Of a stretch of 64,000 nt of DNA, positions 32,491 to 43,610 are shown piece after piece. A model generated the notes under the pieces. The model was not told where the DNA came from and ran no database searches. It saw only the letters and a list, made by a program, of their open reading frames with translations. The DNA lies in contig JAPDFW010000147.1 in the NCBI GenBank assembly GCA_028826165.1, positions 124,001 through 188,000 of the forward strand. The letters are read 5' to 3'. Within the stretch, counting starts at the first letter, position 1. Every line of letters starts with the position of its first letter. Position numbers and translations under genes: made by a program. This DNA comes from Anaeramoeba ignava BMAN. Its lineage: Eukaryota > Protista > Anaeramoebae.

Positions 32491-35400
32491 ATGGTTTTTA
32501 TTAAAAAAATTATTATTCAAGGATTTAAAAGTTATAAGAATAAAACTGTTATTCAATCACTTTCTCCAAATCATAATATAATTGGTAAATTAAAAATTAA
32601 AAAATCAAAATTAAAATAAAATTTAAAATAAAGATTTAACGGTTTTTTTAAATTAAAAAAAAATTTAAGTTGGAAAAAATGGATCAGGAAAATGTCTTCA
32701 AATAAATACACCAGTTCTTATGTACAACGGAAAAATCAAAATGGTTCAAGATATTAAACCAAATGAAAAATTAATGGGAGAAGATTCTAAACCAAGAACT
32801 GTTCTTACAACAACATCAGGACATGGAAAACTCTTCAGAATAACCCCAAATTCATATAATGGTTCAGAACCGTTTGTTGTTAATGAACATCATATTTTAT
32901 CACTAGCTTATTCTTATTCTCCTTCCCAAAAATTCAATCACAAAATCATATTGATATTCAATTGAATGATTTTCTCAAACTCAATCAAAAAACCCAAAAA
33001 AATTATCTTTGTTACAAAACATCAATTGATTTCCCTTCAAAAAAAGTGGATCAAGATCCGTATTTAATGGGTTTTAACACAAAAACCCAAAATAATTATT
33101 CAAAATTATCCAAATCATATTTAATTAATGATAAATCAACAAGAATGAATTTTTTAGCTGGTTTTCTTGATTCAAATGGATTCATAACCCAAAAAAAATT
33201 CGATTCACAATTTTGTTATGAAATCAATTTTGTTTATGATCAAATTCCTCAAAATATTCCCATTTCAATCAAAAATATTCAATTTCTAGTCCGTTCATTG
33301 GGATTTGCAATTTATTCCAAAGAAACTAGTTTAAATGAAGGAGGTTATTGTTATTCTCTTCAAATTTTTGGTGAGAAAATTGATTCAATTCCTGTTAAAT
33401 TACTTGATAGACAAGTTTTTAGTTCTCAATCAAATTGTAAATATGATTATGACACTTTAACTTCAGATTTTACTATTGATTATATTGGTTATGGTGATTA
33501 TTATGGATTTGAACTTGATGGAAACGGTCGTTTTTTACTTGGTGATTTCACTGTAACTCACAATAGCAATTTTTTTCATGCAATTCGTTTTGTTATTTGT
33601 GATTTATTCCATCAAATGAATCAAATTGAAAAGAATGATCTTTTACATGTAATTTTATTTTGGAAAAAAAAATTTTCTTTTATTTTTAATATTATATTAG
33701 GAAGGAGCTGGTTATTCAGCTGTTTCAGCTTATGTAGAAATTGTTTTTGATAATAAAGATCGAAGATTTCCTGTAAAAAAAAAAAGCAATCAATCAAAAT
33801 TGATTTTCATTTTAATTGATTTTCATTTTAATTGATTTAAATTTAATTAGATTGATCTTGATGAATTCTCTTTAAGAAGAAGTATTGATTTGAAAAAAGA
33901 TGATTATTTTCTTAATCAAAAACATATTTCGTAAGATTAAAAATAAAAATGAAAATAAATTATTAAATAAATTATTAAATAAATTTTTAGAAAAAACGAA
34001 GCAATTAGTTTTTTAGAAAGTGCAGGATTTTCACAATCAAATACATATTATATTGTTCAACAAGGAAAAGTAAGATTTAAATATTAATTTTATTTTAAAT
34101 ATTAATTTTCATTTTAAATATTAATTTTCATTTTAAATATTAATTTTTATTTTAAATACTAATTTTTATTTTAAATATTAATTTTTAATTTAAATACTAA
34201 TTTTTATTTTAAATATTAATTTTTATTTTAAATATTAATTTTTATTTTAAATATTAATTTTTATTTTAAATATTAATTTTCATTTTAAATATTAATTGTC
34301 AATTTAAATATTAATTTTCATTTTAAATATTAATTTTCATTTTAAATATTAATTTTCATTTTAAATATTAATTTTCATTTTAAATATTAATTTTTTAAAT
34401 ATTTTCATTTTAAATATTAATTTTCATTTTAAATATTAATTTTCAATTTAAATATTAATTTTTATTTTAAATATTAATTTTCATTTTAAATATTAATTTT
34501 CATTTTAAATATTATTTTAAATATTAATTTTTTTAGGTTAATTCTTTAGCAACAATGAAAGACCAAGAAAGACTTGAATTATTCAAAGAAATTTCAGGTG
34601 TCCAAATTTATGAAGAAAAAAGAACAGAAAGTCTTTCAATGAACAAACAAGCTGAACAAAAACGTCAGAAAATCCAAGAAACACTAGAAAATATTGAACA
34701 AAGAATCAAAGAACTTGAATCAGAAAATCAAGAACTTCATGAATATCAAAAATTGGATCGCAAGAAAAGATCATTAGAATACGCAATATTTCAAAGGGAA
34801 CTCGAATATATCCAGAAAAAATTGAATACTTTGGATAAAAGACAACAATCGGAACAAAAAGAAACTTCAGAATTTTATCTAAAAGCAGAACATGGAAAAC
34901 AGAAAATAAAAGATTTGCAATACAAAATCAAGACCTTGCAAACAGAGGTTGATGGATTAGAACGCAAAATTAGGGATTCTAGAACAAACAGAGAAGATTT
35001 AATCAAGGAAAAAGTTATGGTTGAATTGGATGTCAATGAACTTGATAAAAGAATTGCTTTTGAAAATGAACGCAAAAAAGAAACTCAACAAAAATTAACC
35101 GCCATTCGTTCCGAATTGGAACAAGCAAGTAAAAAACTTTCCGAAATTGTTCCAAAATTCGAAAATGTCGATCAAGAAGAAAAAAATCTTAAACAACAGC
35201 TCAATTCATTTCAACATGAAATTTCAAGTTTGCAAATGAAACTTTCAGGAAAAAGTCAATTTTCTAATAAAAAAGAAAGAGATCAATGGATTAAGAAAGA
35301 AACCAATAAAATTAGTGAAATTATTGAAACGCAAACAAATCAATTAGAAAATTTGAACAAAGAAAACCAACAATTCAAAAATCAACTTCAAGATCAAACA

Positions 35401-37929
35401 ACTCAATCCAAAATGATTCAAAACACAATTTCTGAACGAAGAACAAGAATTGAAGAAATGGAAAAAACAATTAAGGAATTAATCCAAAAAAGAAACGAAC
35501 AAACAGATCAAAGAAAGTAAATTTAAACAAACAAAAAAAAAAATTCACCTTTTTTTGATCTTCTTTTTTTATTTTGATTGATAAACAGAGAACTTTGGAT
35601 TCAAAAAGAAAAAATTGAGCAAGAATTGATTAAATCATCAAATGATTTTACAAAAAACAAAACCCAACTTTATAGCACAATGAGTAAAGTCCTTTCTTCA
35701 GGACTCCAGGAGGTGGAAAGAATAGCACGAGAGGAATCGCTTCTTGTTCACGGACCTTTGATTGAGCTATTCCATTGCGACGAGGCTTATTTCACAGCAA
35801 TAGAAGTCGCATCTGGAAATAGTTTATTTCATATCGTTGTTGATAGTGATCAAATAACAACCCAAATTTTAAACAAAATGAAAACAGGACGAGTCTCCTT
35901 TCTTCCTTTGAACCGTCTTCAGAATTATCCTGTGGAGCCGATCGATACTTCAGATGCAAAAAATATGATGGATGTTCTTGAATTTGATCCGAAATTCCAA
36001 AAAGCATTTGAACACACATTCTCAAAACATTTGATCTGCAAAGATCTCGAAACAGCAATGGATTATTCCAAACGGTTCGGCAAGAACTGCATTACTCTTG
36101 ACGGTGATCAAGTCCTACGCAAAGGCGCTTTAACAGGAGGCTTTCATGACAAAAGAAAATCGAGATTGAAATCGATGCAAAGCATCAAATCTTGTCGAGA
36201 AAATGTCCAAAACTACCAGCAAAAACACCAAGAAGTCGTTGCGCAAATTGAGGAGATCGATCAAGAGATTACTCAAACACTGAGCGAGATCCATAAAATT
36301 CAGACCCAACAAGCTCAAGAAACTGCAACGTTAAAACACACTGAAATGGAACTCAATACAATCCAGTCTTCAATTCTCAATTTGAACAACACAATTTCAT
36401 CCAAAAGCGCACAGATTGAAAAGCTGGAGATGAATGTGAATCAAATGAAAGAGAAATCCAAGTCTCTTTTGGCTGAGATTGACTCTGAAATGAGCGAGAA
36501 ATTAAATTCTCAAGAAAAAAACAAGATGGAAGAATTACAATCAAAACTAACAGAGTTTGAAGAGAAGGCGAAGAGTATAAAAAAGAAGAGAATGCAAGTA
36601 AGAACAAAAAACATTTTCATTTCCAAATGATATCTTTATTAACAAATGATATTTTTATTATGATTATTTTTATTTTTATTTATTTTTTAGTTCCAAACTG
36701 AAAAAACAAAAATTGAAAACAGAAAAACCTTTCTTACAAAACAAAAACAACTTCTGAAAGCAGATCAACCAACAGATTTGCAATCACTTTCAAATGATCT
36801 TTCACGAGAAGCCGCAAATCTTGAAAGAATCAAACAAGCTCTTGAACAAGAAACATTACAATTAAAAGAAAATGAAAAACAAGTTGAACTAACAAAAGAA
36901 AAAATCAAAAAACAAACAAAAAAACTGAATCAGATCCAAGATTTGCAACAACTTCAATATCAACAAGATCTCGAAGATTCGGGACAATCAGATAGAATAA
37001 TAAGCAAAAGAATCGCGTTGTTAAAAATGGAAAAGATCATGAACAAAAGAAGCACTTTGAACAAGAAAAAAGAAGATTGCTTGAATAATATCCGCGAACT
37101 CGGGTTTTTGCCTTCAAAAGACTTCGAGAAACTCAAGGAAAAACCACAAAAACAACTGATGGAAATGTTTGAGAAATGCAACAAAAAACTGCAAGGCTAT
37201 CAACATGTCAACAAAAAAGCTCATCATCAATATTTGAGTTTCATGGATAAAAGAAAAGAACTTGTTCATCAAAAGAAAAAACTCGATCAAGAATATGAAT
37301 CAATTGAAACATTGATTTCTGACTTGGATCAAAAGAAAGACGAGGCAATCAAACGCTCAATTGAAATCATTAATAATCAATTCCAAGAAATTTTCAACGA
37401 ATTAGTTCCAAATGGAAAAGCTTTTCTTATTATGCAACGCAAAGATATTGAAAAAGAAGAACAAGACAACGAAGTATCCAAAAAATCTGGAATTGAAGAT
37501 ATTTCCAGTACAAGCGATCAAACAATCCCCAATGAGCCAACCGCCACTCTTAAGCAGTATTTCGGAATAGGGATTCGAGTCACTTTTGACAAAGAATCCA
37601 AAGCACTTAAAAATCTTGAAGAGCTTTCAGGTGGGCAAAAAGCACTAGTTGCTCTAAGTTTGCTACTAGCAATCCAAAGAGCAGATCCCGCTCCGTTTTA
37701 TTTATTTGACGAAATTGACTCGGCTTTGGATCCTGGTCGAAGAAGAGATGTTTCTTTTTTGATCCAAAAAATGAGTGAAAATGCACAAGTTATCACCTCA
37801 ACTTTTAAGCCAGAATTGATCGGTATTGGTGACCAATTTTTCCATGTTTCTTACAAGAACCGTGTTTCTGTTATTTCCTCAATTTCAAAGGATCAAGCAA
37901 TTCAAATTATTTCTCAAACACAAAAATAA
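32491..37929 (+). CDS. SMC3: Cohesin subunit SMC3, intein-containing; exons 32491-32584, 32670-33648, 33701-33772, 33851-33930, 33991-34069, 34537-35516, 35589-36597, 36691-37929 (C-terminus may extend to 38092)
   Basis: [15 protein letters not shown]; [18 protein letters not shown]; Q-loop YYIVQQGKV; hinge [24 protein letters not shown]; signature LSGGQK; [15 protein letters not shown]. Confidence 0.95.
32693..33564 (+). mobile_element. Intein (~291 aa) with degenerate LAGLIDADG homing endonuclease in the SMC3 Walker A motif
   Basis: Starts at Cys1 ([13 protein letters not shown], block A); block [13 protein letters not shown]; LAGFLDSNG (block E); IQFLVRSLG (block H); block [18 protein letters not shown]; ends VTHN with +1 Ser; excision restores GKNGSGKSN. 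One base appears to be missing near 32930. Confidence 0.95.
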
Positions 37930-38169: not shown

Positions 38170-41100
38170 AAAATATTTTTAATTATTTATTATATTAATT
38201 TTAATTATTTATTAAAATATTTTTAATTATTTATTAATTCAATTTTAATTATAATAAAATATATTAAAAAAGTGGAATAAATATTTTAATAAATATAAAT
38301 ATTTAATTTAAATAATAATTAATAATAATTTAATTTAAAATTGTTTTATTTTAAAGTGAAATAATATTATTATTTATTATATTAATATTTTGGATTATTT
38401 ATTATTTCAATTTTAATTATAATAAAATATATCAAAAAGTGGAATAAATATTTTAATAAATATAAATAATTAATTTTAATAATAATTAATAATAATTTAA
38501 TTTGAAATTGTTTTATTTTAAAGTGAAATATTGATATTATTTATTATATTAATATTTTTAATTATTTATTATTTCAATTTTAATTATAATAAAATATATC
38601 AAAAAGTGGAATAAATATTTTAATAAATTTATTTATAAATTTAAATAATAATTAATAATAATTTATTTTAAAATTGTTTTATTTTAAATTGAAATATTGA
38701 TATTATTTATTATTTTAATATTTTTAATTATTTATTAATCCAATTTTAATTATAATAAAATATATTAAAAAGTGGAATAAATATTTTAATAAAGATAAAT
38801 ATTTAATTTAAATAATAATTAATAATAATTTAATTTAAAATTGTTTTATTTTAAATTGAAGTAATAATATTATTTATTATGTTAATATTTTTAATTATTT
38901 ATTATTTCAATTTTAATTATAATAAAATATATTAAAAAGTGGAATAAATATTTTAATAAATTTATTTATAAATTTAAATAATAATTAATAATAATTTAAT
39001 TTAAAATTGTTTTATTTTAAATTGAAATAATGATATTATTTATTATATTAATATTTTTAATTATTTATTATTTCAATTTTAATTATAATAAAATATATTA
39101 AAAAGTGGAATAAATATTTTAATAAATATAAATAATTAATTTAAATAATAATTAATAATAATTTAATTTAAAATTGTTTTATTTTAAAGTGAAATAATGA
39201 TATTATTTATTATATTAATATTTTTAATTATTTATTATTTCAATTTTAATTATAATAAAATATATTAAAAAGTGGAATAAATATTTTAATAAATATAAAT
39301 ATTTAATTTAAATAATACTTAATAATAATTTAATTTAAAATTGTTTTTATTTTAAATTGAAATAATGATATTATTTATTATATTAATATTTTTGATTATT
39401 TATTATTTCAATTTTAATTATAATAAAGTATATTAAAAAGTGGAATAAATATTTTAATAAAAATAAATAATTAATTTAAATAATAATTAATAATAATTTA
39501 ATTTAAAATTGTTTTATTTTTAAATTGAAATATTAATATTATTTATTATATTAATATTTTTAATTATTTATTATTTCAATTTTAATTATAATAAAATATA
39601 TCAAAAAGTGGAATAAATATTTTAATAAATTTATTTATAAATTTAAATAATAATTAATAATAATTTAATTTAAAATTGTTTTATTTTAAATTGAAATAAT
39701 GATATTATTTATTATATTAATATTTTTAATTATTTATTATTTCAATTTTAATTATAATAAAATATATCAAAAAGTGGAATAAATATTTTAATAAATTTAT
39801 TTATAAATTTTAATAATAATTAATAATAATTTAATTTAAAATTGTTTTATTTTAAATTGAAATATTGATATTATTTATTATATTAATATTTTTAATTATT
39901 TATTATTTCAATTTTAATTATAATAAAATATATCAAAAAGTGGAATAAATATTTTAATAAAAATAAATAATTAATTTTGATAATAATTAATAATAATTTA
40001 ATTTAAAATTGTTTTATTTTTAAATTAAAATATTAATATTATTTATTATATTAATATTTTGGATTATTTATTATTTCAATTTTAATTATAATAAAATATA
40101 TCAAAAAAGTGGAATAAATATTTTAATAAAAATAAATAATTAATTTAAATAATAATTAATAATAATTTAATTTAAAATTGTTTTATTTTAAATTGAAATA
40201 TTAATATTATTTATTATATTAATATTTTTAATTATTTATTATTTCAATTTTAATTATAATAAAATATATTAAAAAGTGGAATAAATATTTTAATAAAAAT
40301 AAATAATTAATTTTAATAATAATTAATAATAATTTAATTTAAAATTGTTTTATTTTAAATTGAAATAATATTATTATTTATTATATTAATATTTTTAATT
40401 ATTTATTATTTCAATTTTAATTATAATAAAATATATTAAAAAGTGGAATAAATATTTTAATAAAAATAAATAATTAATTTTAATAATAATTAATAATAAT
40501 TTAATTTGAAATTGTTTTATTTTAAATTGAAATAATGATATTATTTATTATATTAATATTTTTAATTACTTATTAATCCAATTTTAATTATAATAAAATA
40601 TATCAAAAAGTGGAATAAATATTTTAATAAAGATAAATAATTAATTTAAATAATAATAAATAATAATTTAATTTAAAATTGTTTTATTTTAAAGTGAAAT
40701 AATAATATTATTTATTATATTAATATTTTTGATTATTTATTATTTCAATTTTAATTATAATAAAATATATCAAAAAGTGGAATAAATATTTTAATAAATT
40801 TATTTAAAAATTTAAATAATAATTAATAATAATTTAATTTGAAATTTGTTTTATTTTAAATTGAAATAATATTATTATTTATTATATTAATATTTTTAAT
40901 TATTTATTAATTCAATTTTAATTATAATAAAATAAATCAAAAAGTGGAATAAATATTTTAATAAATATAAATAATTAATTTTTAATAATAATTAATAATA
41001 ATTTAATTTAAAATTGTTTTATTTTAAATTGAAATAATAATATTATTTATTATATTAATATTTTTAATTATTTATTATTCCAATTTTAATTATAATAAAG

Positions 41101-43610
41101 TATATTAAAAAGTGGAATAAATATTTTAATAAATTTATTTAAAAATTTAAATCAAGAATATTAAATAATTTAATTTGAAATTGTTTTATTTTAAATTGAA
41201 ATAATAATAATATTATTTATTATATTAATATTTTTAATTATTTATTAATTCAATTTTAATTATAATAAAATATATTAAAAAGTGGAATAAATATTTTAAT
41301 AAAGATAAATAATTAATTTTAATAATAATTAATAATAATTTAATTTGAAATTGTTTTATTTTAAAGTGAAATAATATTATTATTTATTATATTAATATTT
41401 TTAATTATTTATTAATCCAATTTTAATTATAATAAAATATATTAAAAAGTGAAATAAATATTTTAATAAATATAAATAATTAATTTTAATAATAATTAAT
41501 AATAATTTAAATTAAAATTATTTTATTTTAAATTGAAATAATAATATTATTTATTATATTAATATTTTGGATTATTTATTAATTCAATTTTAATTATAAT
41601 AAAATATATTAAAAAGTGGAATAAATATTTTAATAAATTTATTTATAAATTTAAATCAAGAATATTAAATAATTTAATTTAAAATTGTTTTATTTTAAAT
41701 TGAAATAATAATATTATTTATTATATTAATATTTTTGATTATTTATTATTCCAATTTTAATTATAATAAAATATATCAAAAAGTGGAATAAATATTTTAA
41801 TAAAAATAAATAATTAATTTTAATAATAATTAATAATAATTTAATTTAAAATTATTTTATTTTAAAGTGAAATATTAATATTATTTATTATATTAATATT
41901 TTTAATTATTTATTAATCCAATTTTAATTATAATAAAAATATATTAAAAAGTGGAATAAATATTTTAATAAAGATAAATAACTAATTTAAATAATAATTA
42001 ATAATAATTTAATTTAAAAATGTTTTATTTTAAATTAAAATAATGATATTATTTATTATATTAATATTTTTGATTATTTATTATTTCAATTTTAATTATA
42101 ATAAAATATATCAAAAAGTGGAATAAATATTTTAATAAATTTATTTACTAATTTAAATAATAATAAATAATAATTTAAATTGAAATTGTTTTATTTTAAA
42201 TTGAAATAATAATATTATTTATTATATTAATATTTTGGATTATTTATTAATTTAATTTTAATTATAATAAAATATATCAAAAAGTGGAATAAATATTTTA
42301 ATAAAGATAAATATTTAATTTTAATAATAATAAATAATAATTTAATTTAAAATTGTTTTATTTTAAATTGAAATAATGATATTATTTATTATATTAATAT
42401 TTTTAATTACTTATTAATCCAATTTTAATTATAATAAAAATATATTAAAAAGTGGAATAAATATTTTAATAAAGATAAATAATAAATTTTAATAATAATT
42501 AATAATAATTTAATTTAAAATTATTTTATTTTAAATTGAAATAATAATATTATTTATTATATTAATATTTTTAATTATTTATTATTCCAATTTTAATTAT
42601 AATAAAAATATATTAAAAAGTGGAATAAATATTTTAATAAAAATAAATAATTAATTTAAATAATAATTAATAATAATTTAATTTAAAATTTATTTTATTT
42701 TAAAGTGAAATAATAATATTATTTATTATATTAATATTTTTAATTATTTATTAATTCAATTTTAATTATAATAAAATATATCAAAAAGTGGAATAAATAT
42801 TTTAATAAAGATAAATAATTAATTTAAATAATAATTAATAATAATTTAATTTGAAATTGTTTTATTTTAAATTGAAATAATGATATTATTTATTATATTA
42901 ATATTTTTAATTACTTATTAATCCAATTTTAATTATAATAAAATATATTAAAAAAGTGGAATAAATATTTTAATAAAGATAAATAATTAATTTTAATAAT
43001 AATTAATAATAATTTAATTTAAAAATGTTTTATTTTAAATTGAAATAATGATATTATTTATTATATTAATATTTTTAATTATTTATTATTTCAATTTTAA
43101 TTATAATAAAATATATTAAAAAGTGGAATAAATATTTTAATAAAAATAAATAATTAAATTAAATAATAATAAATAATAATTTAATTTAAAAATGTTTTAT
43201 TTGAATTGAAATATTGATATTATTTATTATATTAATATTTTGGATTATTTATTAATTCAATTTTAATTATAATAAAATATATCAAAAAGTGGAATAAATA
43301 TTTTAATAAAAATAAATATTTAATTTAAATAATAATTAATAATAATTTAATTTGAAATTAATTTTATTTTAAATTGAAATAATAATATTATTTATTATAT
43401 TAATATTTTTATTTATTTATTAATTCAATTTTAATTATAATAAAATATATTAAAAAGTGGAATAAATATTTTAATAAAAATAAATAATTAATTTAAATAA
43501 TAATTGATAATAATTTATTTTAAAATTATTTTATTTTAAATCGAAATAATAATATTATTTATTATATTAATATTTTTGATTATTTATTAGTTCAATTTTA
43601 ATTATAATTA
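38170..43610. repeat. ~167-bp satellite array, about 32 copies (5.4 kb)
   Basis: AAAAGTGGAATAAA marker at 38272, 38439, 38606, 38772, 38939 ... 43457; reverse complement of the 13630-14545 array. Confidence 0.92.

Follow-up and report, generated by a model that had tools for sequence, protein, structure and literature searches.

The inteins closest to the one considered here are known from yeast and other fungi, from prokaryotes and from the same protist. PI-SceI, the VMA1 intein of Saccharomyces cerevisiae (PDB 1VDE, 1LWS), is 454 residues long, interrupts the catalytic region of an ATPase and carries an active two-motif LAGLIDADG endonuclease. The solved fungal Prp8 mini-inteins (PDB 6MWY, 6MX6) are nuclear, reside in a spliceosome protein that is not a P-loop protein and have no endonuclease region. 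In prokaryotes, inteins occupy the Walker A motif of P-loop nucleoside triphosphatases such as MCM (site a), DnaB (site b), RFC, RadA/RecA and Lon, and an archaeal SMC ATPase is mentioned as containing inteins (Novikova et al., 2016, PMC4760082). For the nucleus of Anaeramoeba ignava, the main text of Gallot-Lavallee et al. (PNAS 2023, PMC10710043) describes a ‘cluster 15’ of inteins in 24 proteins and 28 sites of strain BMAN, including VMA, Prp8 and a large number of ATPases of replication and repair, with relatives in giant viruses. The present analysis concerns a stretch of 64,000 nucleotides from the same strain (assembly GCA_028826165.1, contig JAPDFW010000147.1, positions 124,001 to 188,000; hereafter the window), in which the gene of the cohesin subunit SMC3 is interrupted within its Walker A motif. 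The explanation that best accounts for the observations jointly, to which a probability of about 0.75 is assigned, is that the insert is a class-1 intein predicted to splice itself and that the one-base frameshift within it is an error of the assembly.

The insert begins with the Cys1 codon tgt (32693-32695), directly after ...GKNGSGK, and reads Cys-Leu-Gln-Ile-Asn-Thr-Pro from there. Its last residues are ...Thr-His-Asn (33562-33564), after which come Ser (33565) and NFFHAIRFV ([10 protein letters not shown]). The boundaries of 32693 and 33564 proposed in a first-pass annotation of this DNA are exact, as judged from the Cys1 codon, the His-Asn end and the Ser. The insertion point lies between the Lys and the Ser of Walker A, which are K38 and S39 of human SMC3. 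Once the intein is removed, the extein sequence is contiguous and conserved, running from exon 1 through GKNGSGK to the Ser that corresponds to S39.

The identification of the insert as an intein, also made in the first pass, is borne out by its domain homology, by the conservation of its family and by its relatives in the genome. The N-terminal 90 codons match the Pfam family PF05203 (Hom_end_hint), a Hint-domain match of 45.3 bits over a cut-off of 32.1 (E 1.4e-11). In a 30-row alignment with relatives from the same genome, the nearly invariant positions of the family are all present across the two pieces into which the insert falls, namely C1, T6, G29, D31, G43, the block B His, YYGF, Arg, Leu, Val and the terminal His-Asn. 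The block B His aligns with the nearly invariant H66 column, the family having N and not T at the first position of this TxxH-type motif. Blocks F and G read ...[22 protein letters not shown] before the S at 33496-33567, and their terminal H and N are nearly invariant in the alignment. The splicing blocks A, B, F and G are intact as had been stated, in two frames. With its Cys1, its block B His and its His-Asn followed by Ser, the insert is, by its sequence, a genuine class-1 intein of the VMA1/PI-SceI type. An AlphaFold model of the intein at the same site of a second SMC3 paralogue (SMC3b), which is the paralogue's intein and not that of the window, has a pLDDT (predicted local distance difference test) of 87.5 and matches PI-SceI (Foldseek E 4e-16, template modelling score, TM, 0.63) and the fungal Prp8 inteins (TM 0.86).

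The host gene is a canonical SMC3 orthologue. Its best matches among solved structures are all SMC3 chains (E 1e-54 to 2e-69), with the hinge at 1e-54, the C-terminal head at 2e-69 and the N-terminal head and coiled coil at 1e-65, whereas the SMC2 and SMC1 matches are at 1e-15 or weaker and SMC4 likewise falls far below SMC3. Exon 1 by itself covers residues 1/2-30/31 of the solved SMC3 chains (E 1e-7). Pfam recognizes SMC_hinge (7e-27) and SMC_N (4e-21), and the head and coiled-coil region has about 40% identity to SMC3 proteins of about 1200 residues from plants and other eukaryotes. These matches to solved structures, along with the alignment to human K38 and S39, agree with the host and the Walker A site named in the first pass. 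A length suggestive of an intein was seen in none of the 120 best SMC3 orthologues listed.

Several observations weigh against a self-splicing intein in an intact gene. As assembled, the intein comprises 872 nucleotides (3n+2) and has no single reading frame; the Cys1 frame, read from the SMC3 start, ends in a TGA at 32963-32965, 90 codons into the intein. The C-terminal piece of 213 codons is on its own below the threshold of PF05203 (E 0.12, profile positions 189-228 of 228). No protein of 117-373 residues matched this C-terminal piece, and no independent contig or protein spans the site. The intein that was modelled is only that of the paralogue, and splicing activity is predicted from conserved residues only. 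Further, the second SMC3 paralogue, with its intact intein, might in principle stand in for an inactive one. The frameshift is the chief caveat on any functional statement. It had been missed in the first-pass annotation, whose run of about 290 codons is not uninterrupted in the sequence as it was assembled; with a continuous frame the intein would have 291 residues.

The one-nucleotide frameshift is most probably a leftover homopolymer error of the R9 Nanopore assembly, with A5 standing for A6, and not a real lesion. The frame of blocks F and G and of the C-extein opens no earlier than 32884, and the interval between that position and the end of the Cys1 frame contains the homopolymers T4, C3, A5 and A4. 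It contains no GT, and hence a GT-AG intron cannot account for the shift. Beyond the break, the frame remains open for 238 codons up to the end of exon 2, for which the chance is about 1.4e-9 at this composition, and the other two frames of the same stretch hold 11 and 31 stops. All the later SMC3 exons are intact over about 1200 codons and show no second lesion, where a random frame would meet a stop about every 12 codons. The BMAN genome, which is 80.65% A+T, is an ABruijn assembly of R9 Nanopore reads that was then corrected by Racon, by Nanopolish and by Pilon in two rounds (PMC11550330); with such an assembly and such a high A+T content, single-base homopolymer errors are likely. Two other inteins of the family are also one base off in genes that are otherwise intact, one in a P-type ATPase (L055:2900-4017, contig C102) and the other in an ABC transporter (L017:723-1734, contig C126), and in each of them the first stop closely follows an A5 or T5 run. 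In SMC3, a sixth A in the run would yield the same 291-residue intein as a -1 slip there.

If the frameshift were real, this copy of SMC3 would have been inactivated very recently within its intein and would be a young pseudogene, with SMC3b on contig C90 supplying the function. This is unlikely. The frameshift is present in the assembly as it stands and SMC3b, with its uninterrupted intein of 339 residues, does exist, but a gene released from constraint in this manner has to be reconciled with about 1200 downstream codons that are free of any second lesion. Moreover, the supposed pseudogene is far closer to canonical SMC3 than the supposed substitute is: against human SMC3 the window copy scores 174+238 bits and SMC3b 257 bits over the same span. 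The family as a whole gives some room for inactivation, as all three of its frameshifted but otherwise intact inteins are in genes having a paralogue and one further copy is clearly dead (C92, many stops). The assembly method and the A+T content, however, favour single-base homopolymer errors.

The intein belongs to a large family within the genome. Searches of the genome with each of the two intein pieces gave 46 and 42 matches, down to E 5e-29, which chance could by no means produce; the N-terminal piece has 38-62% identity to 41 in-genome paralogues and the C-terminal piece up to 43%. The genome has at least 34 paralogous inteins, and about 35 related copies in all; insertion sites were read for 34, twelve family loci had a flank of no more than about 1.5 kb, and one Prp8 intein on contig C98 was left out of this set. 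Cys1 is common to all the 34 paralogues read, and 30 of them are uninterrupted and have a length that is a multiple of three. About two thirds of the sites read lie directly after the Walker A Lys, between GK and S/T. The hosts at such sites include dynein, three RecQ-like helicases, several MCMs, ABC transporters, three Lon proteases, EF1A-like GTPases, eIF5B, XPB, an RFC-like protein and an AAA protein. Other sites are found between DK and TGT of P-type ATPases, before the catalytic Cys of three phosphatases, and in VMA and Prp8. One copy of the dynein AAA4-type intein (C92:283245-284248, 1004 nucleotides) contains many stops and is near-identical to intact copies on C35 and C113. In a library of 1.84 billion proteins, 5022 matches at E <=0.001 were found, and the nearest relatives outside the genome are metagenomic proteins with inteins ending in ...GDFTVTHN, mostly at P-loops. 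The shared hosts (VMA, Prp8 and replication ATPases) and the virus-like outside relatives suggest that the family is probably cluster 15 as described in the main text of PMC10710043. That Anaeramoeba is unusually rich in inteins, as the first-pass annotation had noted, is likewise stated there.

Both SMC3 genes and both SMC1 genes of A. ignava are interrupted at the same Walker A position. The SMC3b gene (C90:285000-293500) is the more divergent of the SMC3 pair, its exteins being 29-34% identical to those of the window gene, and its uninterrupted 339-residue intein (L032:1963-2979) is found at the identical site, with GKNGSGK followed by C...SHN and then by SNIFHAIR. Similarly, the two SMC1 paralogues carry family inteins of 359 and 367 residues right after the Walker A Lys (L008:1501-2577 on C82 and L043:2412-3512 on C61, respectively). 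The intein phylogeny that had been suggested in the first pass was made from 32 family inteins of the genome, the two pieces of the window intein being joined with an X at the break, while all other searches used the intein pieces and the exons separately, with the public protein KAJ5066087.1 for the spliced downstream part. The maximum-likelihood tree is star-like and has no supported clade that holds the window intein. The approximately unbiased (AU) test does not reject the SMC3 and SMC3b inteins as sisters (p 0.305). With such a tree and such a test, inheritance from before the gene duplication and independent homing are both possible.

The catalytic residues of the homing endonuclease are lost, as read from its two motifs. 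The block C-like motif DPYLMGF (33055-33075) is cut short, without its G-D-G end, and the block E-like motif LAGFLDSNG (33154-33180) has Asn at the position of the catalytic Asp. Both catalytic Asp residues are also absent in the other aligned members of the family that keep the endonuclease region. Of the two profile searches named in the first pass, the one for the Hint domain succeeded; the one for LAGLIDADG, with Pfam Hom_end (PF05204), stayed below its threshold (15.8 bits, with the cut-off at 21.1; E 0.016). An element with a dead endonuclease would no longer be mobile by its own endonuclease and may be regarded as a selfish element turned fixed passenger. It may persist because any imprecise deletion within the motif would destroy an essential ATPase.

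The course of events at the protein level would then be as follows. In the SMC3 precursor as translated, the intein would lie within Walker A, from which the Hint domain would splice itself out by means of Cys1, the block B His, the terminal Asn and Ser+1. Splicing would rebuild GKNGSGK-SNFF, that is, the complete GKNGSGKS, and only the spliced protein could bind ATP and engage SMC1. The mature SMC3 ATPase would thus need splicing, since the P-loop of the unspliced precursor is split.

Such dependence invites the idea, put forward in the first-pass annotation, that the intein is a conditional switch by which redox state, through Cys1, or inhibition by metals gates the maturation of the cohesin ATPase. 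All four cohesin SMC genes carry a Walker A intein of the same family, and the whole cohesin ATPase would respond together; moreover, a figure legend in PMC10710043 describes another A. ignava intein that was assayed in vitro in the presence and absence of TCEP (tris(2-carboxyethyl)phosphine), Zn2+ and ethylenediaminetetraacetic acid (EDTA). However, the same family occurs in about 20 unrelated ATPases and GTPases, and its spread over the P-loops of dynein, MCM, RecQ, Lon, ABC and GTPase proteins points to a selfish, site-promiscuous element and not to a cohesin-specific regulator. The chemistry of Cys1 is generic to class-1 inteins, and the sequence holds nothing beyond it that would speak for a switch, Cys1 being present in 34 of 34 paralogues read. 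No feature specific to SMC3 was found, and no extra Cys pair or sensor feature was seen, none having been searched for. As the selfish-element explanation is sufficient, the switch is very unlikely. In its wider form, the idea would make the four cohesin genes, all of which need splicing for the ATPase head, a splicing gate through which Cys1-dependent, redox- or metal-sensitive control is exerted over cohesin loading and sister-chromatid cohesion in a strict anaerobe, and this is equally hard to credit.

It is still less probable that the frameshift is real and is overcome when the ribosome or the polymerase slips by -1 on the A run, in which case the output of SMC3 would depend on the efficiency of recoding. 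The shift that is required is indeed -1, and the last in-frame codon is an AAA within A-AAA-A, where Lys-tRNA can re-pair, but the canonical X-XXY-YYZ heptamer is absent and no stimulatory structure is known, none having been searched for. The two further family inteins that need a single-base shift have a 5-mer homopolymer just upstream of the first stop, yet five A make a short run for transcriptional slippage. For an essential housekeeping gene, such recoding would be without precedent, and the assembly error explains the same data more simply.

That the segment is a spliceosomal intron, cut out of the RNA and at no time translated, can be dismissed on sequence grounds as hardly conceivable: the gene has several short introns and a GT at 32694 can be paired with an AG at 33565-33566, but the element itself has the ends TG..AT, this only nearby GT/AG pair removes 873 nucleotides and leaves the C-extein out of frame as assembled (or 874, again out of frame, if the element is really 873 nucleotides long), the segment is ten times the length of the neighbouring introns with a G+C content of 27% against about 9% in the measured intron of the gene, intron 2 (introns of A. 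ignava are 91.9% A+T; PMC11550330), it has long open frames with Hint-domain homology and dozens of paralogues, and the last 166 of its codons count as coding sequence in the public gene model.

The preferred reading, that of an intein whose frame is broken by the assembly, also makes sense of the public annotation. The library contains one match of 100%, KAJ5066087.1 (‘structural maintenance of chromosomes protein [Anaeramoeba ignava]’, 1346 residues), which starts at a Met inside the intein (window position 33067), evidently because the frameshift forced the gene caller downstream. This model is without exon 1, the GKNGSGK half of Walker A (together SMC3 residues 1-38) and the first 125 residues of the intein. 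A survey based on proteins would not see the intein as complete, as its N-terminus is missing from the public model. Hence, intein catalogues or phylogenies of SMC complexes that are built on predicted proteins see a defective SMC3 and may miss the intein.

The features of the locus are collected in Table 1. Removal of intron 1 restores the SMC3 reading ...[11 protein letters not shown], and the product of the C-extein start is identical to residues 167-194 of KAJ5066087.1. The exons from 33701 to 37929 encode the coiled coil, the hinge and the C-terminal head. The G+C content of the SMC3 exons is 29-36%, that of intron 2 about 9% and that of the whole window 17%.

Table 1. Features of the interrupted SMC3 gene, in window coordinates
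Feature	Position	Strand	Basis or remark
SMC3 exon 1 (31 codons + 1 nucleotide; N-extein residues 1-31)	32491..32584	+	ATG at 32491
Spliceosomal intron 1 (85 nucleotides, GT..AG, very A+T-rich)	32585..32669	+	sequence read directly
End of N-extein, (V)GKNGSGK, initial half of Walker A as far as the catalytic Lys	32670..32692	+	human SMC3 residues 31-38 by alignment
Predicted intein N-terminal splicing region, Cys1 frame (80 codons)	32693..32932	+	PF05203; block A 32693-32731, block B (NEHHILSL) 32882-32905
Interval of the necessary one-base frame shift	32884..32962	+	three-frame translation; A5 run 32928-32932; no GT
Predicted intein C-terminal part, other frame (210 codons)	32935..33564	+	DNA-recognition region, LAGLIDADG remnant, blocks F/G 33496-33564 ending in His-Asn
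Start of C-extein: Ser+1, NFFHAIRFV...LLH, through the end of exon 2	33565..33648	+	Ser = human SMC3 S39
Spliceosomal intron 2 (52 nucleotides, GT..AG, G+C 9.6%)	33649..33700	+	sequence read
Remaining SMC3 exons (approximate)	33701-33775, 33851-33933, 33992-34072, 34540-35517, 35590-36597, 36691-37929 (with stop)	+	KAJ5066087.1 mapped onto the window

Repeats are found in and next to the gene. A 19-nucleotide minisatellite of about 24 copies (92% match, 34076-34518) fills the long SMC3 intron at 34073-34539, and an A+T-rich satellite of 167 nucleotides in about 32 copies (93% match, 38204-43608) starts about 275 nucleotides past the SMC3 stop codon. The latter has a higher-order period of 334 nucleotides that continues to about 44459, with a G+C content of 4-7% and a strong positive GC skew. 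Just upstream of SMC3, an open frame at 29796-30470 matches the catalytic domains of class I aminoacyl-tRNA synthetases (methionyl-tRNA synthetase, MetRS, type PF09334, E 7e-15) and is probably one exon of the neighbouring gene.

The wealth of inteins in Anaeramoeba and their homing to P-loops are already published (PMC10710043), as are archaeal SMC inteins (PMC4760082), and the locus introduces no new principle. The main text of the former paper makes no mention of SMC or cohesin, and an SMC-evolution preprint covering A. ignava makes none of inteins. The locus clearly places an intein in an ATPase central to eukaryotic chromosome segregation, at the same site in both the SMC3 and both the SMC1 paralogues, and it adds to the published picture in which one intein family spreads among the P-loops of unrelated proteins within a single nucleus.

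Of the systems named at the outset, cluster 15 is from the same organism. With PI-SceI, the window intein shares the Cys1...His-Asn plan, a Hom_end_hint-type domain and an insertion in the catalytic region of an ATPase, and the model of the SMC3b intein suggests a likeness in overall architecture as well. It differs from PI-SceI in host and site, in its shorter length of 291 residues and in its degenerate endonuclease motifs with a Hom_end match below threshold. The prokaryotic P-loop inteins likewise sit in the Walker A motif, whereas the host is here a nuclear, intron-containing cohesin gene of a eukaryote. With the fungal Prp8 inteins, it has in common the nuclear eukaryotic setting and probably, by the TM score of the SMC3b model, the same Hint core, and the in-genome family likewise includes one Prp8 member; the solved fungal representatives differ from it in having no endonuclease region and in residing outside a P-loop.

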